From the NCBI RefSeq assembly GCF_000143415.4, contig NW_003314279.1, forward strand, positions 558,130 through 622,129: a stretch of 64,000 nt of DNA. Direction: 5' to 3'. The position numbers were made by a program, and so were the translations under genes. Below are positions 1,067 to 54,964 of this stretch, piece after piece. The notes beneath the pieces are model-generated. The model worked only from the letters and a program-made list of their open reading frames with translations, did no database searches and was not told where the DNA came from. This DNA is from Selaginella moellendorffii (lineage: Eukaryota > Plantae > Lycopodiophyta). Numbering within the stretch: the first letter of the stretch is position 1; each line of letters starts with the position of its first letter.

Positions 1067-2695
1067 CTACTCTGAAGTTAGCTCTGTTGCGCTCTTGGGA
1101 ATGTGAATGGTAAGCAAGCCATTCCGCAAAAATGCTCTAGCCTTCTTCAGGTCAGCAGTAGAGGGAAGGTTGAACTTCCTTTGCTTGAAGATGTTGGCGC
1201 TGGTCTTTACGGTGAGTTGATCCGGACCTGAACATACCACAATCACTTTCTCTCGTGACAAGCCTGCACAATTGCAAAACCAAAAGCTCTTGGGAAAGCG
1301 TGGAAGTCTTAAGAGACATACCTGGAACTTCGATATAAAGGGTGTGGTGATGCTCCTCATCTACAATAGTTGCCTCGAGACGTTTGTTCGTGGCTGTAGC
1401 AGAGAATAAAAAAAGGAAATTAGTGGAGGTAAAAAGAAAAACAGAAAAATACTCATGTCCAGCTCAGCCTCATCACGGTCCTCAATTGGCACTGTCGAAG
1501 CTGTCCGTTTGAGCGCAGCAGCCCCCTTGGGAAAGCGAATAGTGAGAATCTCATCCTGGAGATTCACTATTGCACCATCGACATTGGCGTGAGTAGGAAC
1601 CACAAGGTTCTCGGGGCGGAATACGTCCTTCTCCGTGGAAACATGCACGCCCTGTCCATCTTTTGCAACACGCACTTGATCCAGAGATGTGAGACCTGTA
1701 CAATAGTAGGCAAGAATAAGAAAATTTATTGAGATATGTCTGCAAATGACTTTACCGGGCACTTGCACATCGACAGTGTAGAACTGCTGGTTCTCGAATG
1801 ACGAGCACAAGAGCTTGCGCTTGTCATATCCTGCAAGCCACAGCAAGGAGAAATAAAAAACTCCAGGCAGGATCAAAGCCATACCTTTATTGTGCTTGAG
1901 GCAGTTTAGCAGTAGTTGGTGTGCATGTTTCTTCTCAAAGTTGTAGAGAGCAATGAGGCCTCCGTGCTGAGAGAACTGTGGGAGTCCCCCGGCATCAGCC
2001 ACCTCTTGCGCTAACCTGAGGCCCCTGGCACACCTTTTCAGGTGATCACTGGAGAAGACAGCGTGTGGGACGACCGGTGTAGCATATGATGGAGAGCGCT
2101 CATGGATCAGAGAGGTGAGGCTTGTCGATTGCAGACCAAAGAGGTTGGGATAAGACTCAGCAGCAAACACACGCGCCTGCTCCTGCAACTCTTGCATGTT
2201 TGGCTCCCCGGAGAAGACTTCCTTCTCAGCTCGGCAAGCAGCACTCCGGCAAAAGTCATGCACTAGGCGAGTTTCTTCCTGTGTAGGGTGGTGTATGGGT
2301 GGCTCTCCACGGAAGCGGCGGAAGTCATCCTCTGAGGCGATGTTCACGAGCTGGATCATGTGTGGATACGGGCAGGGGTAGTCGCCACAGTCGTCAAACC
2401 CGAGTGGTTTTTCGGAGGGTGGAGGGAAGTCGCCGCTCACGATTTCGGTGTACCTGAGCGTGTGATCCAGGAGATGCGCCTGGAAGCAGCCGGTGGCACA
2501 ATCAGAGTCACCTAGCGCCCAAAAGACTTGGCCGAGGACACGGTTGTTTAGGCGGAGCATCACCATCCACAGAAACTCTCCATATTCATTGTAGGCATCG
2601 TCCGTCGGTGGTTTGCTCGCCTGAGGGAGCTTCTTGCCTTTGCTGCTGCTGCTGCTTGATGCCCTCCTTGCTGTATGGACAAGCCACCTTAACAT
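1067..2695 (-). CDS. Orphan N-terminal domain plus two tandem alpha-crystallin (HSP20-like) domains, ~465 aa, intact copy
   Basis: Exons 2695-1885, 1830-1756, 1695-1453, 1393-1322, 1263-1067; all GT-AG, total 1398 nt in frame. ACD1: FYTVDVQVPG-LTSLDQVRV...VPTHANVDGAIVNLQDEILTIRFPK. ACD2: HTLYIEVPG-LSREKVIV...FKQRKFNLPSTADLKKARAFLRNGLLTIHIPK. N-terminus MLRWLVHTARRASSS resembles a mitochondrial presequence. Confidence 0.8.
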
Positions 2696-2739
2696 TTTCT
2701 AGGGTTAAACGTGTGTTCTGCTAGGGTTTTAGGAAGGGC
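2696..2739. promoter_or_regulatory. 44-bp spacer between divergent ATGs with two telo-box-like TAGGGTT(T) motifs (putative bidirectional promoter)
   Basis: tttctagggttaaacgtgtgttctgctagggttttaggaagggc lies between ATG(-) 2695 and ATG(+) 2740; a similar ctagggttttgggtttt occurs in the second cassette at ~53382. Confidence 0.45.
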
Positions 2740-3740
2740 ATGATGTGGGGTTCTCTTTTCAAGCGTTTGCAGCAGCCAAGTTTAATGTTGTTTCGTCTCC
2801 ATAGCAAGGCTCGCACTCATGGTCATGCTCGGGTGTTCTTGGACGCGGGAATTGATATAGAAGTAGATCAATCGGAATGGGATAAACGTGTAACACGGAC
2901 TTTTGGAGAAACATGTACGACTTCAATGCTACAATTGCTCTATTTTAAATATTTAAGGCAAATCCGGGTGAACACTCTCTACAGGATGAGGCACGAGGTA
3001 GGATGATTTCAATACTAGAAATAATATTGATTGAATTTTATAAAAATAAAATTTTGTTTCAGGTTTGGAAAGAAATGATAAGTATTAATCCATCAAGAAA
3101 GGATATAGACCAAGCAGTGACCCTGTTGTTACGCAAAGGAGGTTTGAATTTTTTTTTCTTGATTTCTTTTATTTCTTTTTTCTTCATAGGGATAAAAACT
3201 TTTGGAGACCTTGCTCAGTTTCATCATACTTTTAATGCTCTTTGGACAATTAAACGAAGTCTTCACAAGGATTGGGCACTGCTTACTCCTGATAAAGCAA
3301 GGCATTTGGCACAAGCTTATTTTAAGGTATAATTTAGATTAGTTTTTATATGATAGTTTTTCTTCTTAGGCAGCTGTAGATGACCTGTGGAGTGGTTGCA
3401 ATCCACTTACATTATCTGAAATCATGGACATTCTTATGGGTGGACAAGTATATTTTATTGCTAAGCAATATAGGTTTGCTCTCAAAAAATTTCTTTATTA
3501 TATTTGAAACAATTTTACAGTGATGAGGGAGCTCATCATGATAACAATATTTACAATGTGGTATGGCATTCCTATTCATCTCCATATCCACCAATTATCA
3601 AGATCAACAGATACACTCCACTAGAGGATATGGAAACACCAGATGTATTAATCCAAATTGGTGAAGCTTTACATAACAAGGACTCTCGGCAATTTCTGTT
3701 TTTGAAGGCATTTACAGCAAGTGTGACAAGAAGAGGTTAA
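2740..3740 (+). CDS. Uncharacterised 265-aa protein, five exons, head-to-head partner of the double-ACD gene
   Basis: Exons 2740-2997, 3063-3141, 3190-3326, 3370-3473, 3521-3740; GT-AG, 798 nt in frame, ends TAA. Splice positions and sequence (RM.HEV, GG.K.FGDLA, DWA.L...AR.L.QA.F) recur in the copy at 53460-54050. Confidence 0.7.
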
Positions 3741-3854
3741 TCTTTTTCTGTATTTACACAACAAATTTTGCTTCCAATATATTATATTGAATAAATATAT
3801 TTTTGGTTTGCTTAAGCAAACCCAATATACTTAAAATATGCTTAGATATTCATT

Positions 3855-4045
3855 ATACAATGTGGTATGGCATTCCTATTCATCTCCATAAGATCAACAA
3901 ATACACTCCACTATAGCATATGGAAACAACAGATGTATTAATCCAAATTAGTGAAGCTTTACACAATAAGGACTCTAGGCAATTTTTGTTTGTGAAGGCA
4001 TTTACAGCAAGTGTGAAAGGAAGAGGTTAATCTTTTTCTGTATTT
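3855..4045 (+). repeat. Degenerate tandem duplicate of the last exon and 3' flank of the partner gene
   Basis: tacaatgtggtatggcattcctattcatctccata...agaggttaatctttttctgtattta repeats 3552-3756 with a deletion and stops. Confidence 0.85.
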
Positions 4046-6843
4046 ATAGAGTTTAATTACACAATAAATTTTATTTTAGAGTAATCTCTAATAGATTATA
4101 TACCATACATTATAAATATTATATTAATTCTGAGCTAGTGGTAGTGAATATATCTAGAATATGCTTAAATATTTAGAGATATTCTTGGTTGTTATTCATT
4201 TAGATTAGTTATGTATTTAGAATTTATAAACAAGTTTTATGAGTGCATAGAATATAGAAAGAGAATATAATAAATGTGCATATTATTTAGCCCAAAAACC
4301 CTAGTTTATATACAAGGGTAAGTGATCCAAATTAAAATCAATCCAATAATTACCAAAATCCCACTATGCTAATATTAGTATATAGCATTGTAACCGTACA
4401 CTTGAACCTCACATTATCCGCTCCTTTTGGAATGATGGAAGAGCATTAGGGTTCTCTTATAGGCCACAATCTGAAGGAACATTAGGAGGAAGCATTAGTG
4501 GATCTCTAAATGGTGTTAATTGTTCTTGATCCTTTTGTACAAAACATTACTGTACATGCATAATTTTTGGAAGATTAACTTGTTAGATGTTATGCCAAAC
4601 TTCATAAACTTACAATCTAACTTGCCACACACCTAATATGGACCTTTCCATTGAGCAAAAAGCCCTTTAGATAAACCACATACCATAAGATGAGGAAAAT
4701 GGATTAACACTAAGTCATCCACTTTATACTCCATAGGTGGACGATAATAAAAGTTGTAGTGCTATTGTTGTCCCACTTGTATCGGCTAAGGTGTTTGGTA
4801 GACTCTACTCGGATAAGTGGAAGAATGCTCATCAAATACTATTCCCAGAATCTAGCATCGGCAACTCGCGACAATTGTGAAAGTAAACCCAACTCTATTG
4901 GCAGTATTGGATCATGATCATATAAGAGTTTATATGATAAAGCACCAAGAGAACTCTACAGCCCTATGATATACACATACTGAAGAAACAATAAATAACC
5001 ATCCCAATCCGAATGCAAAAAGTTTAAATACTTCATGATCATCCTTTTGAAGGTCTAAATAAACAATTCCACCAAACTATCTGATTGTGGATGATAAGCA
5101 CTGGTCAAAATATAGTATATCCTCAACTGAGATGCCAAAATGTAAAATGCCTTAGCCATAAATGCAGTTACATTATCCAAAACAATCTACTTCAAACAGG
5201 AATGTTAGAATGCCACTTGATTGAGAAAGAAGTATCCAACAACAATTGTAGATGCACTAACAAGAGCATTAACTTCAACCCAATGAGTCAAGTAGTCAAA
5301 AGTAATAATGACATACTCATTGCCAACAATTGCTCTTGGAAAAGGTCCTATTAAATCAAATACCACCAACTCAAATTGATGGGACATTACAATTGACTTC
5401 AATCGTACTTTCACAACACGAAGGGGAGTATTATAAGTTTAGCACCAAATGCAGCTATGCACATATTGAATAACATCACATTGCATTTCCGGCTAATAAA
5501 AAACTTGTGCAACTTCTCAGTCATATGACGATATTTAATATGCCCACATAGAATAAAAGAATCATGGTAAGTGTGGAGAAAGTGTGGAATAAAAATTAAA
5601 GGCACCACTAGTCGTAAATGATCATCATGATCCATCCCTAAAAAATACCATTCTCAAGATGATATTCAGATTGTAAATGCGGAAATGGCAAGTCATTAGC
5701 AAGTGATGTCAGATTTTCAAACCTGTCGCAAAGCATTCAAATCCACAACTCAATTCTTTAAACCTCATGAACCTTGTTAAGAGAACGTAAATCTTGCTCT
5801 ACACTTTGTGGATATGGAACATCAAGTACAACAACTGCTAATGGTATAGAATCCTCATCTAAAAAATCCATAAATGTTGGAACAACATATTCTTCAGAAA
5901 CATGAAAAGGGAGTGAAGAAGGAAGAGGTGCTCGAGAAAAGGCATCAACATCAGTTATAGAACTCCCCGGGCGATGAACAACATCAAAATCATATATCTG
6001 AAGCTTCAAAGCCCACTAAGTAGTACAACCAACCAAATTATTCTGTTTTAATGATGAAGTAACTACAACATGATCACCATCTAATAACATCTGAGAACCA
6101 TGTAAATATGCATAAAGTTTCTCAAAACCCCAAACTATTGCTAAACACTCCTTCTCTGTCATGGATTAATTCATCTCCATTAGTTGTAATGTACGGTTGA
6201 TATATGCAATGGGATGGCGCTAACTAGGCACACTCGAACTCTCTTGCATCAACACACCTTCAAAACTAATATTAGAAGCATCTATGTACAAAATGAAAGG
6301 ACAAGTGTAGTTATGATACACCAAAACTAAAGGAGTCGTCAATAGCTCTTTGAGATCTGTAAATGCCTATTCATAGTCTACAGACCAAATGAAAGATGAT
6401 GTTAACGACTTCAGCAACGCTCACAATAGTACAATATGATCAGAAAGATGATGTAGCGCACCTTATCTCTCTCCCCTTAAGCCAACTGGAAAAAGGGCAA
6501 TTGCTTGATGAGAGAGCCCTTAGTGGCTATTTTATCCCCATTTATTCCCTAAGGTTCCAAGGATCCACAGTGACAGTATATCCAAATCTCATCCCATGAT
6601 CACATGTGCTACAAATGATCAACAAAACAACCGAGATACTGCACCTTGCCAAATAAGCATTACACATCATTCATACACTTTAGAGTAGAGAACTTTAAAA
6701 CAACCATAAGTTTGTCAGAATCAACTTGCAAATTCTCACAAAAAATATAGTATCTAAGATAAGTTGTGTCCTTAGACCCAAACATACAACTTTTTATAGC
6801 CAATCCAACACCTTACGAACATCATGGACATGTTCCTCCCATG

Positions 6844-9800
6844 TGTAAGGAACTGAGTTTGGACTTTCCAGGAGGTCACCCAACCCAGTACTATTCAAAC
6901 CTAAGGACGTTTAACTTCAAATATCCCAAGACCTTTAACCGATTGGAAAAGGGGGTGCACTCTTGTTCATGGGCCCTTTCCCTTTATATTTGAACCCCTA
7001 TGGATTGTCTTTCGAGTTGTTCCCTTTGGTTGCTTACAATCAGACCGAGTCTGAGTACTAATACAGGTCAAGGGGTGAAAGCCCAAAGCATGCGTCTCCC
7101 GGGGGGGGGGGGTTGCAAGGGGTTCCAAAAGTATAGTAGGGATAGTGAGATCTAGGAACCAGTCTTGAAAGAACTCTCCAGTGGTGCTTTCAAACTGATT
7201 TGAAGTTGAAATTGGGGCCAAGGGGCCTTGGGGCCTTGGGTGGGAGTGAGCATGGACTTAGGTGGTGCCGGAGGGGCCACCCAAAGAAGTGCTCAAGAGC
7301 AACTCCCACTCCCGAAAGGGAAACCGACTACGGTGCTCCTGGCTCATATGGAGTGGTGCCCCACTAGAGTACCTTGTGGCTCATTGGTCCTCGCCCTTCT
7401 TAGGGGCTTGGGCCTTCCCTTCGGGATAGAAGTGGGGGGGTAGAGGTACCCATACCAGGCCGTTAGGCCACGGTGTTTCGCCCCGGTGTCCCGAAGCAAG
7501 TGTTGCACCCAAAGCTTGGGATTTAGAGGGTCCTATGATCAAGTCTTGTTATACTAAGGGATGTTAGGAACCTGGAGGCTTGGTGTTCTTGGTTGCTTAT
7601 GGCTGCGGGGAGTGTAGCTGAACCTTAAGTCCAGTCTAACCTGGGGAGGGGGATTGGGAGAGATTTGGGAATCCGTGGATGAATGGCTAACGCTCCGTTG
7701 CTTGTGCAGTGAGTAGTTAAAACAAAGTAGGACCAAGTAGGAGCTGGTATAATAAGTGGAAACCTTGGCAAAGGAATTTAACAAAAGCCAAAGCAGTGTT
7801 GGTCAGATAGATGAGGTAAGTTGGCAAATTGGAAAGGAAAAATTTGTGGCTTGCAATTTGGTATCGGAGCCTTTTCCTCAATTCTAGCAAAGGATAGAGG
7901 TGGATTGCTGGGAGATGGCAAAGGCAGGTTATAAACGAACCAAGGCGGAGACAGAACCTCCGCTAGAGCTAGAGCCTCTGGTCGAACAAGAGGCTATGGA
8001 TGAGGAATCCTTGCATTATGAGGACTCTAGTGAGGAAACTTTCAAACAGGAGTCTAGTGGCGAGGTTCGGTCGTCAAAGGCTCGATTGGACGTTCTAGAA
8101 GGAAAATTGGCACAGACCAATGCCCTGCTGGAGACTCTCATACGCAAGCTAAAGCGTGACGAGAAGCGGAAGAAAAAGTGAAAGACTATGGATGTTAGCA
8201 GTGCAGAAGGTGCGGACCCTTCGGTAGGGACCAAGGCAGAACTAAACAAGGTTGAACAGACCGATGTGGAATCAGTCCCTTAGGCAGTTCCCAAGTATAA
8301 ACCAAAGCCCCCACCGGTCTTTAAGGGAGTGAACTACTATAAGGTGGTGGAGGATTGGTTTTACGATATAGAGAACTACTTTCAAGCGTTGCGGTTACCG
8401 AGCTCAAAGAAGGTCCCATGTGCAAAACCATACTTGGCAGATAACGCCAAGTCTTAGTGGAGAACGACAGAGGCCAACGAAAGACCGGTAGCCACTTAGG
8501 AAATGATGAAGGCGAGGATTCGCGCGACATACGTTCCTCTGAATGCTACTCTGCACCCAAGGGATGAGTTGAGTAGGCTGAAGCAGACCGAAACCATTCA
8601 AGAGTATGTGAATGGATTTATAGCAAAGAGGATACTAGTCACAGATATGGGTGATATGGATGCGTTCCATGCCTTCATATCAGGCTTGCAAATCTGGGCT
8701 CACGGCAAGGTGATGCGTTGGAACCTGACCAATTACAAAGAAGCATTGGATGTGGCTATCAAGGTGTATTTCAATGATAACCTGCGAAAGGGGAACACGA
8801 TGGGGTCAGGGTCCACGTTTAGCAAAGGGGCCAAACAAAGGGGAATATATAGCAAAGGGAAATTCAAGAAGAGTTCCCTAAGAATGAGTCCTCGGGGTTT
8901 CGGAAAGGCAAATCCGGTGGCTAGCGAGCGAGTACATGGGGGAGTCAAGCAAAAAGAAACAAACCCACGGATAAAAAGGGCAAGTCGGTTAGCAGCGTGG
9001 GAAAAAACGTATGATACAACTGCGGTGAAGCAGGACACTTCTCAAGGGAATGTCCCTACCCGAAGAAGGCTAGAGCCAATATGGCCATTAAGTCGGGTGA
9101 AATCCAAATTGAGGTATGTGATCCAGTCCCTAACTCAAAGTTACTCATTACAAGAGAAACTTTGGTAGAGAGTCGTTCGCGACATCTACTAGCCCTCCGA
9201 GGGAAGTTGGGAGGTAGCTTTGTTAAGATCCTTATTGACACGTGTGCTTCGGATAATTTTGTGGCTACAGACATAGTCCGGCAAGCCGGACTAACGGTGC
9301 AGCGGCTGGGCAAACCAAGGACTATAGAGTTTGTTCAAGGTAGCCAAAGCACTGATGAGGTACTTCGACAAGCAAGAGTCGAAGTAGGGACATGGAAAGT
9401 AGACATGGATTTCACCGTGTTGGACATGGCGGGATTTGAGATAATCTTTGGGATGGATTGGTTCAATCGGTTCATGGTAGCCCTGCATGGACAAGGTAGG
9501 AACCTTGTGGTACTAGCAAATGCCCAAGGAAGAAGATCCAAGGTGGAGGCCCAGGATCTAAAGGTAGGGCAATGCAAGGCCAAAGATTCCTGCCTAAACC
9601 TGGTGTCCACGAGAGGACAACTCACTAAAGGGACCAAGGTAGCATTTTTGTGCTTACTCTCGGTGAGAAGTGACAAAAAGACTGGAACAGAAGAAGTACC
9701 TTTAATGATCCAACGGGTGTTGGATCAACTCCAGGATACCATGCCAGAGGAGCTACCGGCGGGGTTGCCCCCTACACGACCGATAGAATATAAGATTGAG

Positions 9801-11332
9801 CTAGTCGAGGGTGCTGAGACGGTGGTTCGCCCCCCCTATCGTTTGAACGAAAAAGAATTCGCGGAGCTCAAGTGCCAACTAGAGGAGTTGGTGGACAAAG
9901 GGTATGTTAGGTTGAGCAAGTCACCGTATGGGGTGTCGGTGCTATTTGTGAACAAGAAAAGATGGATCTATGCGCATGTGCATAGATTACCGGTTGCTCA
10001 ACAAATATACCAAGAAGAACAAATACCCTTTGCCAAGGATTGAGGATCTGTTTGATAGGTTGGGAAACGCAAAATACTTCTTGAGGATTGACATAAGGTT
10101 AGGATACTACCAAATCAAGGTAGCAAAGGAAGATGTCGAGAAGATAACCTGTCGAACAAGATATGGAAGCTTTGAGTTTCTGGTGATGCCCTTTAGGCTA
10201 TGCAATGCGCCAGCAACGTTTTCGGCGTTCATGAACCACATCTTTATACCTTATTTGGATCGCTTTGTGGTCGTCTATATTGACAACATCCTGATCTATA
10301 GCGAAACGCTAGAGGAACATGCCAAACACCTGACGAAAGTGTTTGAGAAACTAAGGGAACACCAGCTATATGCTAAAGAGTGCAAATGTGATTTTGCTCA
10401 ACAAGAGGTAAAGTTTCTCAGGCATGTGGTGGGCAAAGATGGGCTCAAAGTGGACCTTGAGAAGGTCCAAGCAATCCAGGATAGGGAGTTACCATCGAAT
10501 GTACACAAGTTAAGGGCATTCTTGGGGCTATGCAACTATTACCAAAAGTTTATCAGACACTATTGGAGAGTAGCCTTGCCCTTAACAGACCAAATGGGAA
10601 AAAGGAAGATGGTATGGACAGCAGAATGCGAGGTGACATTTGTCCACCTCAAAGGGAAGTTGAGGAAGGCTCCCGTGTTGGCGTTACTAGACTTTGGTAA
10701 GGACTTTGAGGTAGAAATGGATGCTTCGGACTTTGCATTGGGTGTATTTTTGAAGCAAGATAACCATCCAGTAGTGTTCTTCTCGAAGAAGTTGGACAAG
10801 GCTCAAAGGAAGTGGCCTGCCCACGAGAAGAAATTATTTGTAGTGGTTAAAGCGCTCAAGGAGTGGCGACACTACCTTGGGAGACACTTCAAGGTTGAGC
10901 ATGGACTGACTTGAGGTTGAGACTGGGGCCGAGGGGCCTTAGGTGGGAGTGAGCATGGACTCGGGTGGTGTCGGAAGGGCCACCCAAGGAAGTGCTCAAG
11001 AGTAACTCCCACTCCCGAAAGGGAAACCGACTGCAGTGTTCCCAACTCATGTGGAGTGGTGCCCCATTTGAGTACCTTGTGGCTCATTGGTCCTCGCCCT
11101 TCCTAGGGGCTTAGGCCTTCCCTTCGGGATAAAAGTGGGGGGGTAGAGGTACCCATACCGGGCCATTAGGCCACGATGTTTCGCCCTAGTGTCCCGAAAC
11201 AAGTGTTGCACCCAAGGCTTGGGATTTAGAGGGTCCCATGATCAAATCTTGTTGTACCAAGGGATGTTAGGAACTTGGAGGCTTGGTGTGCTTCGTTGCT
11301 TGTGCTTGTAGGGAGTGTAGCCGAACCTTAAG
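6844..11332 (+). mobile_element. Chromovirus-family Ty3/gypsy copy A: 5' LTR 6844-7855, gag-PR-RT-RNaseH, integrase deleted, partial 3' LTR 10905-11332
   Basis: LTR TGTAAGGAAC...GCTTGCA; tRNAi-Met PBS TGGTATCGGAGC 7859-7870; protease ILIDTCAS; RT RMCIDYR and VVYIDNIL; RNase H MDASDFALG. Several in-frame stops and frameshifts. Confidence 0.92.
6861..6918 (-). other. 5S rRNA-derived segment (A-box / intermediate element / C-box region) inside the U3 of LTR A
   Basis: Minus strand GAAGTTAAACGTCCTTAGGTTTGAATAGTACTGGGTTGGGTGACCTCCTGGAAAGTCC aligns ungapped to plant 5S nt ~48-105 (GCAGTTAAGCGTGCTTGGGCGAGAGTAGTACTAGGATGGGTGACCTCCTGGGAAGTCC, recalled from memory), 47/58 identities by hand. Confidence 0.85.
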
Positions 11333-12234
11333 ATTGGTAGTAAGAGTAGGAGGAATTGTACCATGCATTGTGAATGCTGCCATCAATTGAGTTTAATTAT
11401 TCAATTGCAACCACATAACATTAAAAAATTGCACCAATGTAAGCCACAAATTTTTCCTTTCCAATTTGCTAGCTTACCTCATTTATCCGACCAACACTAC
11501 CTTGGTTTTTGCTAAGTTCCCTCGCCAAGGTTCTCACCTATTGTACCAGCTCATACTTAGTTCTACTTAGTTTCAGCTACTCACTACACGAGCAATGGAG
11601 CGTTAGCCATCCATCCATGGATTCCCAAATCTCTCCCAATCCCCCTCCCCAAGTTAGACTGGACTTAAGGTTCAGCTACACTCCCCGCAGGCACAAGTAC
11701 CCAAGCACACTAAGCCTCCAAGTTCCTAACATCCCTTGGTACAACAAGACTTGATCATAGGACCCTCTAAATCCCAAACCTTGGGTGCAACACTTGCTTT
11801 GGGACACTGGGGCGAAACATCATGGCCTAACGGCCCGGTATGGGTACCTCTACCCTCCTCACTTCTATCCCGAAGGGAAGGCCCAAACCCCTAGGAAGGG
11901 TGAGGACCAATGAGCCACAAGGTACTCAAATGGGGTATCACTCCACATGAGCCGCGAGCACCGCAGTCAGTTTCCCTTTCGGGAGTGGGAGCTGCTCTTG
12001 AGCACTTCCTTGGGTGGCTCTTCCGACACCACCCGAGTCCATGCTCACTCCTACCCAAGGCCCCTCAGCCCCAGTCTCAACCTCAAGTCAGTTTGGAAGC
12101 ACCATTGGAGAGTTCCTTCAAAACTAGTTCCTAAACCTCACTATCCCTACTATACTTTTGGAACCCCCTGTAGCTCCCCCCCCCCCCCCTAGGAGATGCA
12201 CGCTTTGGGCTTTCCCCTTGACCTGTATTAGTAC

Positions 12235-12530
12235 TCAGACTCGGTCTCGGGCTCGATCTCAGACTCGATCTTGGACCCGACTTCGGAGTTGGTCTCGGAC
12301 TCGATCTCGAACTCGATCTCAGACCTGATCTCAGACTCGACTTCGGACTCAACCTCGGACTCAGTCTTGGACCCGATCTCGGATCTCGGACTCGGTCTCG
12401 AACTTAGTCTTGAACTCGGTCTTCGAGTCAATGAACTCGGTCTTTGAGTCAGCCTCAGACTCGATCCCGGACTCTATCTTGAACCCGGTCTCAGAGTCGG
12501 TCTTGGACTTGATCTCAGACTTGGTCCCAT
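12235..12530. repeat. Degenerate hexamer (CTCGGA/CTCGGT/CTCGAT) tandem array in U3 of the copy B 3' LTR
   Basis: Visible 6-nt periodicity; yields spurious (ES)-rich ORFs. Confidence 0.9.
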
Positions 12531-15500
12531 CTGATGAACTCTTTGTCATTTTGGTCATGCTTTCGGGGATCCTTTAGTCTATGACATCTCGGGGAGTTGG
12601 TTCCTTACAACTCCACCACCCATAGAAGAAGTTTGATGCCCACATTGAACATCTCTTTTCATCCTACGACTTGTTGACCATGTCTCCGGGGGCATTCCCC
12701 CCACTTAGCGGTGTGCCTAAGTTAACCTCCCTAGCCAAGAGCCCATGACAACGGAATATAGGTGTCTCTATACCCCTCACCCCACCATGCCCTAGTATGG
12801 GGTTGGGACTTGAACCTAGCCTTGCTTTACTAGCGAGTTAGGACTCAAACCCAACCTTTGTAGAATATGTCTACGGATTCAACATCCCCGCGAGGAGTCG
12901 GGCGTAGTTCCCTACACTTGGTCGACCTAGCTAACCCATGCTAATTAGCTTACCTTTGGCGTGCCTTTGGGACCCAACATATGCCATTGCTCAACTTCAC
13001 AAATTGATACTTTCATTGAACTTTGCATAAATACATAGAGTTCTGCCTCGCAGAAATTCCTCCACTAGATCTTGCGCGTGCACTAGGTTCTCTTTCGGTT
13101 CCCATGTTGCTTCGCAATGTGGAAATCCTTTCCACTTCACATAGAATTCTCTCACCTCGCGTCCTTGTCACTTGCTCTTGCGCGCATTGAGTATGGCCTC
13201 GACTTCGTATTCCTCTTCCCCTTGGATAACCTTAGGTAAAGGTCTTACTTGGTCCTTGCGAAGCGGATCCTCAAAGTATGGCTTGAGTAAGTTCACGTCG
13301 AACACTAGGTGCATCTTCCCCATCTCTCGAGGAAGTCGAAGACAGTAAGCCACTTTACTAATTCGTGCCTCAATCTCGTAAGGCCCCGCGAACCTACTTA
13401 AGGAACTCAAGATTAATTCATTTATAGGAATACATGCATTTTTACCTTTGGGTCAACTTCCGGCTGATCCCACTTGGTAACCTGAGGTTCTTGGTGTTCA
13501 GCCACACCTTCTCCCCAGCTTGGAATTCTACATCCCGGCACTTCTGGTTCGTGTACTTGGTTTGCCTTTGTTGAGCCCATTCCAAGGAATCCCTCACTAG
13601 ATTCCAAATGTTAAGTCTTTCTGCCGTGAATGCCTCCACTGCAAGTAACTTTCCATGATACTCAGCCACGCCGAGTTCCACAGGACCTTCAATAGTTCGC
13701 CCATTGATGACTTCCTATGGACTCACCCCAATACTTGAATGTGGTGAGTTGTTATAACACATTTTCGCAAGTCCCAAATGACTTACCCAATCGGTCTGGT
13801 CTCCCGAGACATAGCATCGCAAATAATCCTCCAGTTGCCTATTCACCCTTTCCGTTTGTCCGTCTGTCAAAAAGTGTTAGAGCCATCAAACTTGACTTAA
13901 TACTCAATACCTGTCTGTGGGTGATAGCCTATGCTAAATTTCAACTTAGTGCGATACTGTTCCAGGAGAGTTCTCCAGAACCTACTAGTGAAGATCTTAT
14001 CTCGATTTGAGATAATCTCTTCTAACCTTCCCCACACTTGAACCATTTGTTCAAAGAACAGCTTTGCCACACCTTCCGCATCCACTTCCGTTGTGGTGGG
14101 TATGAAATGTGCCATCTTAAAAAATTGGTCCACCACCACGAATATTGCATCGAACCCCTCGCTTGGGGGGAGTCCCGTGATGAAGTCCATCGTAAGACAT
14201 TTCCACGGATGATCTGGAATTGGGATGCTTTGTAACAAGCCCCCACTAGCCTTAGTCACGGCTTTGACTTGCTGACAAGTTGGATATGTCTTTACATAGT
14301 CTTGGACATCCTTAGCCACATCTGGCCAATAATACTTCCTCTTGAATAAGCCCATCATCTTGGGCACTCCGCCGTGACCTGCAAGAGGTCCATCATGACA
14401 CTCTTCTAAGGCTACCTTCCTTAGTTCCCCTTCTGGAACATACACCCTCGATTGTTTGTAATAAATGAGTCCGTTGTGTTCTGCATAGCCCGTTTTTTCT
14501 TCCGTTGGCAGCTCACCTCTCTAGTGAGCTTCCCGTGCCTCTAGATTCCTCAGCAACACTTCTTGTGCTAGCCCATTTTTCTCATATGCTGTCCGCACAT
14601 CATCCCAAAAGGTTGTTGTCGCGCTGGATATCGCTAACTTCAAGCTCGCTTTTCGACTTAGCGCACACCACGATGTTGCTCTTCCTAGGCTTGTATAGAA
14701 TCTCGCAATCAAACTCGGCCAAAGCATTGGCCCACCGACCCTATTTCCCTCTCAGGTCGGGCTATGACAAGAAGTGTTTCATTGCCACATTATCCGTGTA
14801 AACCTTGAAATGTCTCCCAAGGTAGTATTGCCACTCCTTGAGTGCCTTGACCACCGCAAACAATTCTTTCTCGTGGGCAGGCTACTTCCACTGAGCCTTG
14901 TCCAACTTCTTTGAGAAGAATGCTACTGGATGGTTGTTTTACTTCAAAATTGCGCCCAACGCAAAGTCCGAAGCATTCGTTTCTACCTCAAAGTCCTTAC
15001 CAAAGTCTAGTAACGCCAACACGGGAGCCTTCCTCAACTTCCCTTTGAGGTGGACAAATGCTGCCTTGCATTCTGTTGTCCATATCATCTTCCCTTTTCT
15101 TGTTTGGTCCGTTAAGGGCAGGGCTACTCTCGAATAGTGTCTGATAAACTTTTGGTAGTAATTGCATAGCCCCAAGAATGCCCTTAACTCATACATTTGA
15201 TGGTCGCTCCCAATCCTGGATCGCTTGGACCTTCTCAGGGTCCACTTTGAGCCCATCCTTGCCCACCACATGCCCGAGAAACTTTACCTCTTGTTGAGCA
15301 AAGTCACATTTGCACTCTTTAGCATACAACTAGTGTTCTCTTAGTTTCTCAAACACCTTTATTAAATGTTCGGCATGCTCCTCTAGCGTTTCGCTATAGA
15401 TAAGGATGTTGTTAATATAGATGACCACAAAGTGATCCAAATAGGGTACAAAGATGTGGTTCATCAACGCCAAAAACATTGCCAGCACATTGTATAGCCC

Positions 15501-18102: not shown

Positions 18103-18352
18103 GGACTCGATCTCGGACCTGACTTCGGACTCGGTCTCGGACTTGATCTCGGACTCGGTCTCAGACCCGATCTCGGACTTGACTTCGGACTCGACCTCGT
18201 ACTCGGTCTCGGACCCGATCTCGGATCTCGAACTCGGTCTCAAACTCGGTCTCGAACTCGGTTTCCGAGTCAGCCTCGGACTCGATCCCGGACTCTATCT
18301 CGAACTCGATCTCAGAGTCGGTCTTGGACTTGATCTCAAACTTGGTCTCATC
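18103..18352. repeat. Same hexamer array in the copy B 5' LTR, adjacent to an internal LTR deletion of ~570 bp
   Basis: ccaagcacac joins directly to ggactcgatctcgg at ~18102, whereas the 3' LTR has 11711-12240 in between. Confidence 0.88.
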
Positions 18353-19919
18353 GAATGAACTCTTTGTTATTTCGGTCATGCTTTTGGGGATCCTTTAGCC
18401 TACGACACCTTAGGGAGTTGGTTCCTTACAACCAATTGTTGCTCTAAAGTCAAAGGAAAAAAAGGCTACTACTCTACCATAAAGATAAACAAAAAGGAAA
18501 GAATAAAAAAGAAGAAGTTGAGAAAAACAATAAAAAAAGGGAGATCTCAAAAATGCAAAAGCTAAATCTAAACCAAAATCCCAAAAACAATAAGAAAAGG
18601 GAGACCTAAACAATGCAAAAGCTAGATCTAAACTAAAATCCCAAATCCTAACACTCCTCAAAGACAATTAAAACTGCCCCTCACCTTTACCAATGTGAGT
18701 GTATAGAATATGAAAACAAAATACAAGAAATGTGCATATCAATTAGCCCAAAAACCTTAGTTTATATACAAGGATGAGTGGTCCAGATTGAAACCAATCT
18801 GATAACTACCAAAATCCCACTATACTGATATTAATATATGTTATCATAGCTGTACACTTGGACCTCATAATTTATAAAACTAGAATATACTAAGAAGTAA
18901 GTTATTCTACCATCTAATAGTTGATATGTAATATATTCATAATTATAATCATCCAATTGATCAATATGATTGATAAAAATAAGCACTATTAATAAGAAAA
19001 TGAAGAATTGCTGCATGCAATATGCAGAAAATTATTTAATATCATATTATAAACTTAATGATCTAAAAACTTCTAAAATATTATTTATAGAAGTGGGTTA
19101 TAAGTAAATATTAAAACGCTAAAAGGTTTTATGATAGAAGCTCAGTATAAAATTTAGTAGAAATATTCTAATAATACATACCTCATAAAGAGGTCCAAGT
19201 ATTCTATGAATCTTTTCAAAACTGTCCCACCTAAAAAAATTAAAATATTTATAATATCAAAAAGCTTTTTTTAAGATTATAATAATAAAAACTATTTTAA
19301 ATTAATTATCAGCAATGTAGTTGAACATATTCCATCTGAAACCCATTGATAATTTTCATGTTGCTACTTAGATTTGTGACTATTGATCACCTGTTTATCA
19401 ATGTCAATTGACTCTAGTAAGGCCAAATTTACAAAGCAGGCTAGAAGAAAAGTTATACTAGTCAACATCATCAATGCACTATTCAATTGTTATGTAACCT
19501 TGCTATGTCTCTAATGTACTTTCCAAGGGAGAAAAATGAAAAACTAAACTCTAATGATGAATCAGTTTAAGAACTCCTAGGATATGGAGATGGCTCAAAC
19601 TGTCCCTTTTTGCTAAGATAAAAGAAAATTATCTTAAAATTTGGAAAGATGAAAACAAAATATTAGGAAAATTTATGTTTCAGAAATACAATCTCTCTAA
19701 AACATATTTGATCCTTTGCCATTCTCCTCCCCTAAGTAAAAAGTATGTTTATAAACACTACAATAATTTGCTACATGTTGAATATAACAATGTTTGGTTT
19801 GCTTAATAGTAGTGTTTATTATTTACCAACAATGTTTGGTTTGCTTAATAGTAGTGTTTATTATTTACCAATAGATTTAATGAAGTTTATAATTAACACA
19901 CAAGATTAATCATAATACA

Positions 19920-20002
19920 CTACATACACACACAGATATAGAGAGAGAGAGAGAGATACATACATACATACATACATACATACACATGTATGTATGTCTG
20001 TA
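19920..20002. repeat. Compound microsatellite (CA)n(GA)n(TACA)n
   Basis: Seen directly; a ~43-bp tandem duplication lies just upstream at 19787-19871. Confidence 0.9.
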
Positions 20003-20339: not shown

Positions 20340-21567
20340 CCATTGAGCTCTTGGAATGCAAGCCATTCCCGAANNNNNNNNNNNNNNNNNNNNNNNNNNN
20401 NNNNNNNNNNNNNNNNNNNNNNNNNNNNNNNNNNNNNNNNNNNNNNNNNNNNNNNNNNNNNNNNNNNNNNNNNGCTCTAGCGTCCTTCAAGTCAACACTA
20501 AAGGAAATTTTGAGCTTCCTTTGCTGGTGCTGGTCATAACGATGGGTTCTGGCCCTTCACAACCCACAATCACTTTCTCTAAAGCAAAAGCTTTTGAGAA
20601 AATACGTGAAAGTTTCACGGGACTATATAAAGAATATGGTAATAGTTGCCTTGAAACATTGATCCAGTGAAGTGAGACCTGTGCGATAGGAAGAAAAAGA
20701 AATAAATAACAACATCTGCAAATGACTTTACCGGGCACTTGCACATCGACAGTGTAGAACTGCTGGTTCTCGAAGGAGGACCACAAGAGCTTCCGTGCGT
20801 CATATCCTGCAAGCCACAGAGAAAAAAGGAAAATAAAACTCCAGGCATGATTAGAACCATACCTTTATTGTGCTTGCAGCAGTTTAGCAGTAGCTGGTAT
20901 GCGTGTTTCTTCTCAAAGTTGTAGAGAGCGACGAGACCTTCGTGCTGAGAGAACTGCGGCAGCCCCCCGGCATCAGCCACTGCCTGTGCCAACTCGAGGC
21001 TTTTGGCACACCTCCTCAAGTCATTGCTGGAGAAGGAAGCCTCTGGAATGACAGTATATGAAACTTCTTCGATCAGATTGGAGAGGTTCGTGGACTGCAG
21101 ACCAAGGAGCTTGGGATAACAATCAGCAGCAAACACACGCGCCTGCTCCTGCAACTCGTGCACGTTTGGCTCCCCGGAGAAGACTTCCTTCTCAGCTCGG
21201 CAGGCAGCACTCCTACAGAAGTGTGTGCGGTGATGTATGGGTTCCTCTTTACAGAAGCGGCGGAAGTTATCCTCCCAGGCATCGTCCACAAGCTTGATCA
21301 TGCGTGGATACGGGCAGGGGTAGTCGCCGTTGTCGTCAAACCCGAGTGGTTTTTCAACGGGTGGGAATTTGCCGCTCACGATTTCGTTGTACTCAAGCGT
21401 GTGACGCAAGAGATGCGACTCGAAGCAGCCGGTGGTAGCATCACAGTCGTTGAGCGCCCTACAGACTTAAGGAGCCGGACGGTTCTCTAGACGGAGCATC
21501 ACCATCCACAGAAACTCTCCATACTCTTTGTAGGCCTTGTCCGTCAGTTTGCTCACCTGAGAGCCTT
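20340..21567 (-). pseudogene. Double-ACD family copy 2; most of ACD1 deleted, premature stop; bounded by assembly gaps
   Basis: Exons 1-2 homologous to copy 1 (KPLGFDD.GDYPCPYP, DAGGLPQFSQH, FENQQFYTVDVQVPG), then GLTSLDQ jumps to the exon-4 homolog and stops. N gaps at 20374-20473 and 21568-21694. Confidence 0.75.
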
Positions 21568-21694
21568 NNNNNNNNNNNNNNNNNNNNNNNNNNNNNNNNN
21601 NNNNNNNNNNNNNNNNNNNNNNNNNNNNNNNNNNNNNNNNNNNNNNNNNNNNNNNNNNNNNNNNNNNNNNNNNNNNNNNNNNNNNNNNNNNNNN

Positions 21695-23305
21695 GCGCTA
21701 TCATATTTCCGTTGCATGCAAATGGTAAGCAAACCGTTTCTGGAAAAAGCTCTAGTCTGCTTCATGTCGGCACTAGAGGGAAGCTTAATCTTCCTTTGCT
21801 TGAAGGCGTTGGCATTGCTTTTAACGATGAGTTCGTTCCCTGCACCCACTATTATTTTCTCTCGCGACAAGCCTACACAGTCACAAACAAACCAACAGCT
21901 CTTGAGAAAACTAAAAAGTTTCAAGGGGTATACCTGGAACTTCGACATGAAAAATGTGGTAATCCTTGTCATCTTCAATAGTTGCCTTGAGATGTTTGTT
22001 CTTGGCTACAAATATGATATCAATACTTTTGTTTAGCTCACCCTCGTCGAAGTCCTCAATTGGCACTGTCAGATCTGTCTCTTGGCAAATGGTGAGAATC
22101 TCATCCTGGAGATTAACTATTGCACCATCGACATCAGCGTAAGGAGGAATGGCAAGCTTCTTGTGCCAGAACACGTCCTTCTCCGTGGAAACAAGCACAC
22201 CCTTTCCATCTTTCGCAACACGCACTTGATCCAGCGATGTGAGACCTGTCGCGCACAAGGAAAAAGAAATAAGATAACAACACCTGTAAATCATTACTTA
22301 CCGGGCACTTGCACATCAACAGTGTAGAACTGCTGGTTCTCTAAGAACGACCAAAATAGCTTGCGCTCGTCATATCCTGCAAGCCACAGAGAAAAAGAAA
22401 TAAAAAACTCCAGGGAGGAAAAGCCATACCTTTATCAACGAGCTTGTGGCAGTTTAGCAGCAGTTGGTAAGCGTGTTTCTTCTCAAAGTTGTAAAGAGCG
22501 ACGAGACCTCCGTGACGAGGGAACTCTGGCAACCCCCCGGTATCAGCCACCTCCTGCGCCAACTCAAGGCTCCTGGCACACCTCGTCAACTCAAGGCTGG
22601 TGACACCAGTATGTGGCACGACCGGTGTAGCATATGATCGAGATTGCTCCCAGACCAGAGCGGCGAGGCTCGTGGACCGCAGACCAATGAGCTTGATATC
22701 AGAGGCAAACAGACCGCCTGCTCCTGCAACTCGTGCACGCTTGGCCCCCTGGAGAAGACTTCCTTCTCGGCTCGGCAGGCAGCACTCCGGCAAAAGTCGT
22801 GCGCGAGGCGAGTTTCTTCCTGATCATGTCTGGATACGGGCAACCGTAGTCGCCTATGTCGTCAAACCCGAGTGGTTTCCCAGCGGATGGGGGGAATTCG
22901 CCGCTCACGATTTCGGTGTACTGGAGCATGTGATCCAGGAGATGCCCCTGGAAGCGAGATGTAGGGGTGGCTCTCCATGCAAGCGGCGAATTGCATCCTC
23001 CGAGGCATCGTTCACGAGCTTGACCATGGATGGAAACGAGTCGCCGCAGTCGTCAAGCCCGAGTGGTTGTTCAACAGGGGGGAATTCGCCGCTGGTTGTG
23101 ATGCAGGACATGCGACTGGAAGGCGTCGCTGGCCCACCCACTGCCGTCTAGCGCCCTAAAGACTTGGCCGCGGACACGGTTGTTTAGGCCAGAAACTCTC
23201 CATACTCGTCATCAGTGTTTTTCTCACCTGAGAGAGTTTATTGCATTTGCTACTGCTGCTCCTACTCCTACTCGCATTTGCTATGTGGATGAAGCGCTTT
23301 AACAT
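21695..23305 (-). pseudogene. Double-ACD family copy 3; both ACDs present, N-terminal exon frameshifted with an internal duplication
   Basis: ATG at 23305 (MLKRFIHIA...); the GEFPP..(K/Q)PLG.DD block is present twice (22860-22925 and 23040-23095); ACD exons conserved. Confidence 0.75.
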
Positions 23306-24294: not shown

Positions 24295-24695
24295 TTTTGC
24301 AGGCGAGCGACCAGGATATTGGTGCCGGGTTGCTGCTCTTTCCTAGCTGTCAACCTCTTCGACCTCTGTTTTCTCAATCTTTCAGGATCGTGGCCTGCAA
24401 TGGGGAGTGAAAGTCGCAAGTCTGTCAATGTTCGAATCATTTCAGTGTTCATCAAATCATCTCTTTCTCGTTAATCTTCTAGCTTGTCTAAAGTTCTCCC
24501 TTCCACCAGGATTACGCTCTTCCTCAATGGCATGTTCGGAACAATCCAGATGATGAGCGTGACAGACTAATTTGTGGAGCACAAGCAGCAGAGCTCTAAA
24601 AGTCGATCAAGATAAGTATAATAAATGCGCTACTAAATCGCGCTCTTTGGAATGCGAATGGTAAGCGAATAAAAAACTCTACCCTGCTTCGAGTC
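24295..24695. pseudogene. Mosaic of ZIFL fragments (+, ~24295-24555) and an ACD2/3'UTR tail (-, ~24590-24695)
   Basis: ctttctc...agcttgtctaaagttct...ccaggat and aatggcatgttcggaacaatcca match 32085-32230; ctctaaaagtcgatca and gcgctctttggaatgcgaatggtaagc match 992-1115. Confidence 0.65.
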
Positions 24696-39019: not shown

Positions 39020-39072
39020 AGCTCGTGACTTCGTGATCAAGAGCTTTAAGTTGATCCATAGCCCTGTGACTT

Positions 39073-51802: not shown

Positions 51803-53350
51803 CTACTGAAAAGTTAGCTCCGTTGCACTCTTGGGAACGCGAATGATAAGCAAGCCGTTCAGGAAAGACGCTCTAGCCTGCTTCACGTCAGCACTGGAGG
51901 GAAGCTTAAACTTCCTTTGCTTGAAAACGTTGCCGCTGGCATTAACAATGAGTTCCTGCCCTGCACAGTCCAACAATCACTTCTCTCGCGACAAGCCTGC
52001 ACGGCAAAAGCTATTCAGGAAACGTGGAAGGCTTCAGGGACATACCTGGAACTTCGACACGAAGAATGTGGTGATGCTCGTCATCTGCAGAAGTTGCCTT
52101 GAGGGGTTGGTTCTGGAGAGAAAAACCGGAAACTATTAGTAGATGAAGAAAGAACAAAAACATAAGGTCGATACTCTTGTTCAGCTCAGTCTCGTCGAGG
52201 TCGTCAATTGGCACTGTCGAAGCTGTCCGTTTGAGCGCAGCGGCTCCCTTGGGAAAACGAATGGTGAGAATCTCATCATGGAGATTGACTATTGCACCGT
52301 CAACGTTGGCGTAACGAGGAACCACAATGTTCTCGGGATGGAACACGTCCTTCTCCGTGGAAACACGCACGCGGCCTTGTTCATCTTTTGCAACATGCAC
52401 TTGACCCTGAGACGTGAGACCTGTATAAGTGTACGCAAGAAAAAATTAAGATTACAACGTTGTCTGCAAAATGACTTACCGGGCACTTGCACACCGACAG
52501 TGTAGAACTGCTGGTTCTAGAAGGACAACCACAATAGCTTGCGCTCGTCATATCCTGTAAGCCACAAAAAGAAACGAAGTTAAAACACTCCAGGCAGGAT
52601 CGAAGCCATATCTTTATCAAAGAGCTTGCGGCAGTTTAGCAACAGCTGGTAAGCGTGTTTCTTCTCAAAGTTGTAGAAAGCGACGAGACCGCCGTGACGA
52701 GGGAACTCCGGCAACCCCCCGGCATCAGCCACCTCCTGGGCCAACTCAAGGCCCCTGGCGCACCTCGTCAACTCAACGCTGGTGACACCAGTATGTGGCA
52801 CGCCCGGTGTAGCATATGATCGAGATTGCTCCCAGACCAGACCGGCGAGGCGCAGAACAAAGAACTTGGTATAACACTCAGCGGCAAACAGGCGCGCCTG
52901 CTCCTGCAATTCGTGCTCCCTCTTGGCAGCACTCCAGCAAAAGTTGTGCACGAGGCGAGTTTCTTCCTCTGTGCGGTGATGTATGGGTGGCTCTCCACGC
53001 AAGCCGCGGATTACATTCTGCGAGGCGTTTTTCACGAGTTTGGTCATGTCTGGATAGCCGTAGTCGCCTATGTCGTCAAACCCGAGTGGTTTCCCAGCGG
53101 ATGGGGGGAGTCGCCGCTCACGATTTCGGAGTACTGGAGCATGTGATCCAGGAGATGCCCCTGGAAGCACCTGGCGGCACAATCAGAGTCACCTAGCGCC
53201 CGAAAGACTTGGCCGAGGACATGGTTCTCTAGACGGAGTATCACCATCCACAAAAACTCTCCATACTCCGTCCGTCAGTGGTTTGCAGCGGCAGCAAAGG
53301 CAAGAAGCTCTCTCAGGTGACCTACTCCTACTCGCGCTTGCTGTGTGGAT
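51803..53350 (-). pseudogene. Double-ACD family copy 4 (frameshifts in exon 1, premature TGA in ACD2)
   Basis: Same five-exon layout as 1067-2695; deletion before EYGEFLW; GLSREK* in the last exon. Confidence 0.8.
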
Positions 53351-53432
53351 GCCGCTCGCGCTTGCTTTTCTCGGGTTTGTCTCTAGGGTTTTGGGTTTTA
53401 GCGATCTCAAGCTAGCTCTCATTGCTCCTCCC

Positions 53433-54115
53433 ATGTTCTCTAGACTCGCTGGCAAGTGCAATACTTTGACTGTTTGCGAGACTCGGATGAAGCACGAGGT
53501 AAGGCTCTAATATTTTTTTTCTTGTTAGGTTCGAAATCAACTGGCGCGCATCCAGAGAAGCCGTGGAGAGCGCTGTCTCAAAGCTATTGAAAGCAGGAGG
53601 TTTGTGGGTGGGTTGTATTTTATTTGAATTTATTTTACAGCGGTGAAGAACTTTGGAGACCTTGCGAAGTTCGTAGGAGATACGGACAAGGCTTGGTTTG
53701 TCATCCAGAAATACGGGAACACGGACTGGGCTTCACTTTCAGAGCTCGATGCAAGGCTTCTTTCACAAGCGTTCTTCGAGGTATGGTCTTAAATCTTTTT
53801 TCTTATCCATCGGCTGTGGAGTGGCTGTCGCCGGTTGCCTTTCATTCAAGCGTTTATGGCTAGCATGAGGCAATTTCTTTCCTTTTTTGTTTTGAGGGAC
53901 AAAGCTCATGGATTGACAGTTATTTTGTTTTTAAGGGACCGATGTACATTTGGAACTGCTGACAGGTATTTCTTTTCATCAACGATGTTCATTTATAGGA
54001 ACAGCAGCAGAGAGCTCGTGGACAGCATCAGCAGCAAGCGCGAAAGAAGAAATGGAGCGGAACCCTATCTCCTTGCAGGAAGATGGGATAATCTGGGCAT
54101 CAGAAGATCCTAGAT
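53433..54115 (+). pseudogene. Diverged copy of the head-to-head partner gene
   Basis: RMKHE|gtaag, KLLKAG|gtttg, KNFGDLAKF, DWASLSELDARLLSQAFFE|gtatgg parallel exons of 2740-3740; N-terminal part shortened. Confidence 0.65.
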
Positions 54116-54489: not shown

Positions 54490-54743
54490 GACTTCAGCTG
54501 CTAGATCACATTCTTCGTGTCGAAGTTCTGGAACTCTCGCGTTAGCTTTTGGCTTGTTGAACGTCCAGGCTTGAAGTGATTGTGGACTGTGCAGGGCCGG
54601 AACTCATCGTTAAGACCAGCGGCAACGTCTTCAAGCAAAATAAACTTAAGCTTCCCTCTAGTGCTGACGTGAAGCAGGCTAGAGAGTCTTTCCGTAACAG
54701 CTTGCTTACCATTCGCGTTCCAACAGAGCTAGCTTTTCAGTAG
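54490..54743 (+). pseudogene. Inverted ACD2 fragment of the double-ACD family
   Basis: DCAGPELIVKTSGNVFKQNKLKLPSSADVKQARESFRNSLLTIRVPTELAFQ*; reverse complement of ~51800-52090. Confidence 0.85.
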
Positions 54744-54964
54744 TGTCTTCTATTGTTATAAAAAACATTGTGTTACCTTTGATCAAGCTGAAAAATATGC
54801 AATAGAATTGATTGCAGTTTCTTTGAGCTCCATAAATTTAGACTAATTTTTTAAAATTTATTATTACTATTATTATTATTATTATTATTATTTATTTCAA
54901 ATCCAAGTTTGTTCAAACTATCTTTACATTTCTTCGTGATCAAAATATTGTAAGAATCGTCGAT

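Follow-up and report, generated by a model that had tools for sequence, protein, structure and literature searches.

A divergent gene pair coding for a double alpha-crystallin domain protein and an orphan partner in the lycophyte Selaginella moellendorffii

Two genes whose start codons are separated by a mere 44 bp, one (gene A) coding for a protein that has two alpha-crystallin domains (ACDs) and the other (gene B) for a protein of no described family, raise the question of whether they constitute a functional unit or are neighbors by accident. They lie near one end of a 64,000-nucleotide stretch of the Selaginella moellendorffii genome (assembly GCF_000143415.4, contig NW_003314279.1, positions 558,130 to 622,129; hereafter the window), where they are arranged head to head as A1 and B1 of what we term pair 1. 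What the pair presents is an atypical member of the ACD family together with an orphan partner. We consider the chances slightly better than even that A-B is a real, lineage-specific divergent pair whose members are co-transcribed; that the two proteins also act together in one organelle is a more tentative proposal, which we hold to be less likely than not, and the suggestion made at the outset that they are a chaperone and its client is likewise conjectural. Beyond the single intact pair visible in the window, there is a second intact pair elsewhere in the genome, A accompanies B at every B locus found, and a telo-box is common to three of the intergenic spacers; the recurrence of the pair as a cassette is thus stronger than could be seen from the window alone.

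Both gene models are intact on opposite strands, as an original prediction made from the letters of the window had claimed. A1, on the minus strand, consists of the exons 2695-1885, 1830-1756, 1695-1453, 1393-1322 and 1263-1067, interrupted by introns of 54, 60, 59 and 58 nt, all four with GT-AG boundaries. Its coding sequence of 1398 nt specifies 465 residues plus the stop, corresponding to a protein of ~52 kDa; the spliced model matches the deposited protein P0021 at 465/465 positions, and the allelic copy P0001 is identical at 445/465. B1, on the plus strand, comprises the exons 2740-2997, 3063-3141, 3190-3326, 3370-3473 and 3521-3740 (258, 79, 137, 104 and 220 nt, respectively), which yield a coding sequence of 798 nt (265 residues plus the stop). 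An alternative exon-4 donor at 3447 was rejected, since it breaks the frame; the deposited orthologue has its donor at 3473, the only choice that closes it. The deposited B models P0009 and P0020 begin at an internal methionine (window 2986), and the entries SELMODRAFT_412521 and SELMODRAFT_413078 omit 82-83 N-terminal residues (window 2740-2997; L001 9705-9956) that are conserved with the paralogue P0013. Because this omitted part is homologous to P0013 (residues 30-86 of B1 match its residues 70-137), a start at 2740 gives the better B1 model.

GL377583.1, a scaffold of 2.35 Mb, carries both A1 and B1. A region of GL377584.1 at ~1.97-2.03 Mb runs colinear with the window, with identities of 96-98% in genes and 81-86% in the flanks, and we infer that this scaffold represents the second haplotype within the assembly. 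On both haplotype scaffolds, pair 1 is found in intact form. Its products are already in GenBank as the S. moellendorffii hypothetical proteins SELMODRAFT_412520 and SELMODRAFT_412521, and a literature search for these locus tags retrieved no paper that names them. In the analyses below, the queries for database and structure searches were single exons, open frames or deposited proteins rather than the joined spliced A and B proteins, and the joined coding sequences, assembled from window coordinates, served only for local tblastn against the fetched loci and for substitution counts.

Sequences related to B were found at four loci, and at all four (4/4) they stand head to head with a copy of A. 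The second intact pair (pair 2; L006 on GL377712.1) has A at 7942-9941 on the minus strand and B at 10001-11211 on the plus strand, separated by a 59-bp spacer, and codes for the proteins P0003 (A) and P0013 (B). Its B gene likewise has five exons and shares the positions of introns 2-4 with B1, but is without intron 1 of B1 and has one extra intron. In the two other pairs A and B are each broken: in pair 3 (L003) A is without its 3' exons, and B is without its 5' end and contains at least six stops; in pair 4 (window 51.8-54.1 kb, equivalent to L007) A is frameshifted in both haplotypes and B is decayed. The ancestral frame of the pair 4 copy of B (B2) is lost, since its exon 2 is 8 nt shorter than that of B1 (71 versus 79 nt) and out of frame, and in the window haplotype B2 has additionally suffered a deletion of ~334 bp relative to L007 11678-12032. 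The divergent arrangement therefore recurs in decayed form where it had first been noticed, with A2 frameshifted and B2 truncated and deleted, and within the window pair 1 is indeed the only intact one. We also considered L003 and L006 as alleles of each other, and rejected this because their neighboring genes are not colinear.

Thus, B always occurs with A, whereas A does not always occur with B. No B-like sequence was found near the two A genes of L008 (10001-11664 on the plus strand and 15137-17042 on the minus strand, which lie tail to tail 3.5 kb apart), the gene of L002/L004, the tandem arrays (L005; window 20.5-23.3 kb) or L003b. The earlier claim that the pair duplicates as a cassette consequently holds for the unit at four loci, two of them intact, but needs to be amended in that A has also been copied without B, as solo genes and in tandem arrays. 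Likewise, independent occurrence of the two genes, which had been named as evidence against a two-component module, is seen for A (L008 and the arrays) and never for B. The further ACD gene copies reported at 20.3, 21.7 and 54.5 kb are real, but at 24.6 kb there is only a remnant of ~20 codons.

In a midpoint-rooted tree of exon 1 of A, the paired copies form no clade and span the root; by this evidence, pairing would be the ancestral state and the solo copies duplicates of A alone. On such a history, the pair would predate the diversification of the A family; it has been duplicated as one unit, and two loci retain it in intact form. Between L003 1758-3146 and L006 9963-8529 the exons of A are no more similar than its introns (97-98% for both), at a level above that of B and the flanks (88-93%). 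This pattern suggests gene conversion among the A copies, so that A is not a reliable clock; it is matched by the low synonymous divergence (dS) of A from pair 1 to pair 2, 0.34, where B has reached saturation.

The substitution patterns indicate that both members of the pair have been maintained as coding genes. A is clearly under purifying selection: the ratio of nonsynonymous to synonymous divergence (dN/dS) between the haplotypes is 0.29 (p 2e-4), with the strongest constraint in the N-terminal domain (0.13) and a ratio of 0.51 in the ACDs. For B, the comparison of pair 1 with pair 2 (B1 against P0013; 37% identity) gives a dN of 0.62 (proportion of nonsynonymous differences, pN, 0.42) and a dN/dS below 1, though dS is saturated (proportion of synonymous differences, pS, 0.72), and both frames are open. 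The B copy of L003, by comparison, is only ~10% diverged from the P0013 gene. Open frames at saturated divergence, as opposed to the many stops in this ~10%-diverged copy, argue that B has long been kept as a coding gene.

The spacer of pair 1 is identical between the haplotypes at 44/44 positions. A gap of just 44 bp forces the promoter of each gene to overlap the other, and its transcript to begin within that other gene or right beside it. The spacer contains a telo-box, AAACCCTAG (in the sense of A), at 2721-2729, 34 nt upstream of the A start codon, and AACCCTAGA at 2698-2706, 11 nt upstream of it. Pairs 1, 2 and 4 all have the telo-box AAACCCTAG in their spacers, and the solo gene L008b has a telo-box 20 nt upstream of its start codon. 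The motif CTAGGGTTTT occurs four times in the window as against 0.15 expected, and two of the four occurrences are in A-B spacers; the two further exact matches are situated away from these, at 4295-4304 and 29690-29699.

In S. moellendorffii telo-boxes are enriched at the promoters of genes for mitochondrial and cytosolic, but not plastid, ribosomal proteins (PMC3212954). Divergent gene pairs with a bidirectional telo-box promoter (PMC3212954, PMC3022908) resemble A-B in the head-to-head orientation, the very short spacer and the presence of AAACCCTA near the starts; compared to these the A-B spacer is extreme, with 44-59 bp between the start codons, and its promoter activity is putative. The telo-box evidence fits a shared, growth-linked promoter for A and B, as a lead and not as proof, and the spacer very probably serves both genes, which would then be transcribed together. 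Reading the two genes as a co-regulated pair, as had been done at the outset, is therefore reasonable given the shortness of the spacer, its complete identity between haplotypes and the motif common to pairs 1, 2 and 4. Since telo-boxes mark the genes for mitochondrial and cytosolic ribosomal proteins in this species and not those for plastid ones, a mitochondrial connection of the A-B pair is, by analogy, slightly favored.

An organelle is also suggested by the N-termini of the two predicted proteins, which had been described as rich in arginine and serine and free of acidic residues. This description is accurate: the first 31 residues of A1 and the first 34 of B1 have no Asp or Glu (chance ~0.02 each) and are rich in Arg, Lys and Ser. 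The leader pattern of A1 is repeated in its paralogues P0002, P0003, P0017 and P0019, and the B protein of pair 2 (P0013) likewise begins with a basic stretch free of acidic residues. Such presequence-like leaders could direct the import of both proteins into an organelle.

The N-terminal domain that follows the leader in A1 showed no match in Pfam, PDB, NCBIfam or the ESM Atlas. The C-terminal part, by contrast, can be unified with a known fold: the Pfam HSP20 model (PF00011) matches the last exon of A1 with 24.9 bits (cut-off 20.8) and the paralogue P0003 with 40.2 bits, and a profile of the A family run against PDB recovers the ACD of Hsp20.1 (E 5.7e-6) as well as HSP18.1 and HSP21 (~4e-4 to 2e-3). 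Consistent with this, AlphaFold models two beta-sandwiches with the ACD fold at a predicted local distance difference test score (pLDDT) of ~58-73, the first of which (58-70) aligns to the second at 31% identity. A Foldseek search with the model returned the two-ACD protein Tsp36 (2bol) as the best match (E 4.6e-8), together with many solved ACDs, with target TM-scores of up to 0.75. A is thus a member of the alpha-crystallin/HSP20 domain superfamily. Judged by its sequence, it nevertheless lies outside the canonical definition of a small heat-shock protein (sHSP), whose monomers measure 12-42 kDa and contain one ACD, with its 52 kDa, two ACDs, extra domain of 240 residues and no IXI tail; the chain ends 4-8 residues after a final PKS motif (P0001, P0002, P0004), with no I/V-x-I/V motif of the kind that serves oligomer assembly.

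Searches for relatives point to a narrow distribution of both genes. Two word-indexed searches with A retrieved S. moellendorffii proteins only (P0001-P0012), and pattern scans of bacterial and archaeal genomes and of the JGI metagenomes yielded no relatives. The N-terminal domain of A accordingly appears to be restricted to S. moellendorffii, as judged by word- and pattern-based searches, which are of lower sensitivity. With B, a word search recovered P0009 only, and an exhaustive HMMER search of 1.84 billion representatives gave three real matches, P0009, P0013 (336 aa, E 4e-21) and P0014. B is an orphan among public proteins, as the exhaustive search finds it in this species only. The suspicion that the genes are orphans was therefore well founded for both, by exhaustive search for B and by word and pattern searches for the N-terminal domain of A. 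A bacterial repeat protein (P0015; 6 short stretches, E 8e-5) was judged a spurious match. The match P0014 (SELMODRAFT_413086, 521 aa; L007 10001-12341, equivalent to window ~52.1-54.1 kb) is a chimeric mis-model containing B2: its first ~300 residues are the antisense of the A2 pseudogene and the remainder is frameshifted B2.

No domain was detected in B by searches of Pfam, NCBIfam, PDB (sequence and profile) or the ESM Atlas, and a profile-profile comparison of A with B revealed no relation between them (probability 1.6%). B encodes a fast-evolving, probably helical protein with a leader similar to that of A.

Comparison with known systems helps to delimit what A could do. Tsp36 of Taenia saginata (2bol) and other two-ACD sHSPs of flatworms and annelids (PMC13226371) share with A the presence of two ACDs per chain, to which A adds the helical domain of ~240 residues and the presequence-like leader. 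However, A and Tsp36 are only 13-14% identical in the structural alignment, and the profile search of the A family gave no sequence match to the two-ACD animal proteins; the double ACD of A may well be an independent duplication in a lineage-specific plant family. The chloroplast proteins HSP21/HSP25.3 (7bzw, 5nms; ACD2 profile E ~5e-4 to 2e-3) have, like A, a targeting-type leader followed by an ACD. Plant organellar sHSPs, at ~21-26 kDa, form dodecamers and possess one ACD per chain with an IXI motif at the C-terminus; A has 52 kDa and two short ACDs, its chain lacks a tail beyond the final PKS motif, and its organellar location is putative. ACDs also occur in the Arabidopsis proteins IDM2 and IDM3, which carry extra domains, are nuclear and act as adaptors rather than chaperones. 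A resembles these in using the ACD as a module of a larger, non-canonical protein and is not known to be related to them in sequence; the extra domain of A fits no described family. With its architecture of leader, helical domain and two tandem ACDs without an IXI tail, A would more likely be an adaptor or a holdase with an intramolecular pseudo-dimer of its ACDs, as in Tsp36, than a classical oligomeric sHSP.

Several observations weigh against the reading of A-B as a co-transcribed pair whose products act together. Genes no more than 44-59 bp apart would remain linked even in the absence of selection. At least two apparently intact A genes (P0019/P0004, P0017/P0002; L008) have no B within 10 kb, and joint decay or joint preservation has been counted at just 2+2 loci. 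The AlphaFold models of the A1 N-terminal domain (8-sequence family input; helices only, pLDDT <50) and of P0009 on its own (pLDDT 42, partly disordered) are too low in confidence for a function to be assigned from the fold. For B1 itself, the allelic dN/dS is 0.66, based on 21 differences and not significantly below 1; exons 2-5 are AT-rich (GC 0.34) with a CpG observed/expected ratio of 0.15, as in silenced DNA; and the protein clusters of pair 1 hold GenBank accessions only, unlike those of pair 2 and the solo A genes, which also include RefSeq XP accessions. This composition, the duplication of the last exon and the missing XP accessions together allow for weak or absent expression of B1. 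A rival is a neutral scenario, which we regard as rather unlikely, wherein B arose from, or rides on, upstream antisense transcription of the A promoter and has no direct functional or physical link to A; its promoter would perhaps lie inside the 5' end of A, and the pairing would persist as the short spacer leaves no room for breakpoints. B has no relatives outside the species, no recognizable domain and a low-confidence, partly disordered model; it is never away from A, of which A-only duplicates are frequent; and it evolves about three times faster (dN between pairs 1 and 2 of 0.62, versus 0.19 for A). Yet B is a protein of 265-336 residues encoded in five exons, whose conserved blocks and intron positions survive saturated divergence, and both intact copies of B (2/2) lie beside an intact A, just as both decayed ones (2/2) lie beside a broken A. 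Furthermore, the N-terminal domain of A is equally orphan, so that missing homologues say little about a de novo birth of B.

The same features of B1 could alternatively mean that it is a relic, unexpressed and on its way to becoming a pseudogene, perhaps along with A1, the functional pair being the one on GL377712.1; we deem this improbable. It would account for the weak constraint between the alleles, for a composition of exons 2-5 like that of the neighboring repeat-rich flank, for the partial duplication of the last exon and for pair 1 having no XP accession in either haplotype. The compositional anomaly spans a block at 3063-6000 (B1 exons 2-5 and the 3' flank; GC 0.33-0.34, CpG observed/expected 0.15-0.32 versus 0.83 for the window) and leaves exon 1 of B1 normal; it may be the footprint of long-term cytosine methylation. 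However, both haplotypes retain the full five-exon frame of B1, with all splice sites intact and with in-frame indels of 9 and 3 nt as the sole ones, the 265 codons remain open despite the AT-rich composition, and A1 is clearly under purifying selection. A different explanation, put forward speculatively in the original prediction, is that of a selfish toxin-antidote element (a gamete or spore killer), in which the harm done by one protein, possibly in mitochondria, is neutralized by the other. We found nothing specific in its favor and hold it to be very improbable. What speaks for it is generic: the genes are closely linked and confined to one lineage, vary in copy number, have been rearranged locally and show a haplotype-specific deletion in B2. 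Plant gamete killers such as PK3 of Arabidopsis are likewise tightly linked, lineage-specific genes with structural and copy-number variation and are associated with mitochondria (PMC11761171), a connection that for A-B is a possible one. A-B shares no sequence or domain with PK3, no segregation distortion is known for it, and neither protein is detectably similar to any known killer or antidote. Moreover, pair 1 is intact in both haplotypes, leaving no sensitive one (what differs is the deletion in the already dead B2), A is constrained (0.29) and B has a dN/dS to its paralogue below 1, A has spread without B, and the telo-box points to growth-linked, housekeeping-type rather than germline-specific regulation. 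Were the pair nonetheless a module of this kind acting in mitochondria, it would be a first for lycophytes, and the birth-and-death copies of the A cluster would be what past drives left behind. Least credible is the idea that the A-B unit owes its multiple copies to being the cargo of a transposable element: there are several copies on three scaffolds with long terminal repeat (LTR) elements and other repeats nearby, but the unit is bordered by neither inverted nor direct terminal repeats, searches revealed no domain resembling a transposase, pairs 2 and 3 are homologous beyond the unit into unrelated flanks in the manner of a segmental duplication, and the A-only tandem arrays point to unequal crossing-over.

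Together these observations lead us to prefer the reading of A-B as a lineage-specific divergent pair that is transcribed together and possibly targeted to an organelle. If A and B do work together, the result would be a two-protein module specific to this lineage and centered on an unusual ACD protein, in which a leader, a new helical domain and tandem ACDs are joined. With 44 bp between its start codons the pair offers a clean case for the study of extreme bidirectional promoters, and it may also reveal in what way an orphan gene is kept beside its neighbor through repeated duplication; no major open question hinges on it. The features of the pair and of the related copies in the window are collected in Table 1.

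Table 1. Features of pair 1 and of related A and B sequences in the window
Feature	Position	Strand	Remarks
A1	1067..2695	-	five exons, 465 aa; identical to SELMODRAFT_412520 (P0021)
Second ACD of A1	1093..1375	-	residues ~383-457, exons 4-5
First ACD of A1	1525..1805	-	residues ~280-352, exons 2 and 3; predicted beta-sandwich
N-terminal ~240-aa domain of A1	1885..2602	-	residues ~32-272; predicted helical, no family matched
Leader of A1	2603..2695	-	first 31 residues without Asp/Glu; 7 Arg/Lys, 9 Ser/Thr; presequence-like
Spacer between the A1 and B1 start codons	2696..2739		44 bp
B1	2740..3740	+	five exons, 265 aa; last 183 aa = SELMODRAFT_412521 (P0020)
Partial tandem duplicate of the B1 last exon	3856..4046	+	downstream of the stop; 87-92% identical to 3552-3756; in both haplotypes
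Solo A copy	20474..21565	-	allele of P0005; between assembly gaps 20374-20473 and 21568-21694
Solo A pseudogene	21709..23263	-	three stops in the exon-1 equivalent
Remnant of ACD2 C-terminus	24639..24695	-	marginal, ~20 codons, E 0.015 in a 1.4-kb search
A2 (pair 4)	51812..53357	-	pseudogene; frameshifts and stops in window and L007
Telo-box in pair 4 spacer	53383..53392	+	
B2 (pair 4)	~53437..53876	+	decayed; blocks homologous to B exons 2-4, exon 1 truncated
Inverted fragment of A last exons	54507..54753	+	

Runs of N at 20374-20473 (100 nt) and 21568-21694 (127 nt) bracket one of the A copies in the tandem array at 20.4-23.3 kb, and the assembly of this array may be faulty. The small scaffold GL377916.1 (L005), with three tandem A copies, looks like the other haplotype of this array. 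The remainder of the window contains genes and elements of other kinds. The 5' part of a gene for a pentatricopeptide repeat (PPR) protein occupies positions 1-857, immediately downstream of gene A, and the same arrangement is seen at L001 11986-14789. Further along on the minus strand are an intronless PPR gene of 744 codons (36806-39040) and two pieces of cytochrome P450 genes (49516-50313 and 57297-58478). An LTR retrotransposon at ~7040-18100 has gag-protease-pol frames, with a Pfam match to an aspartyl protease at 9081-10043, and is ~90% identical to a copy in L003 at 13148-21078.

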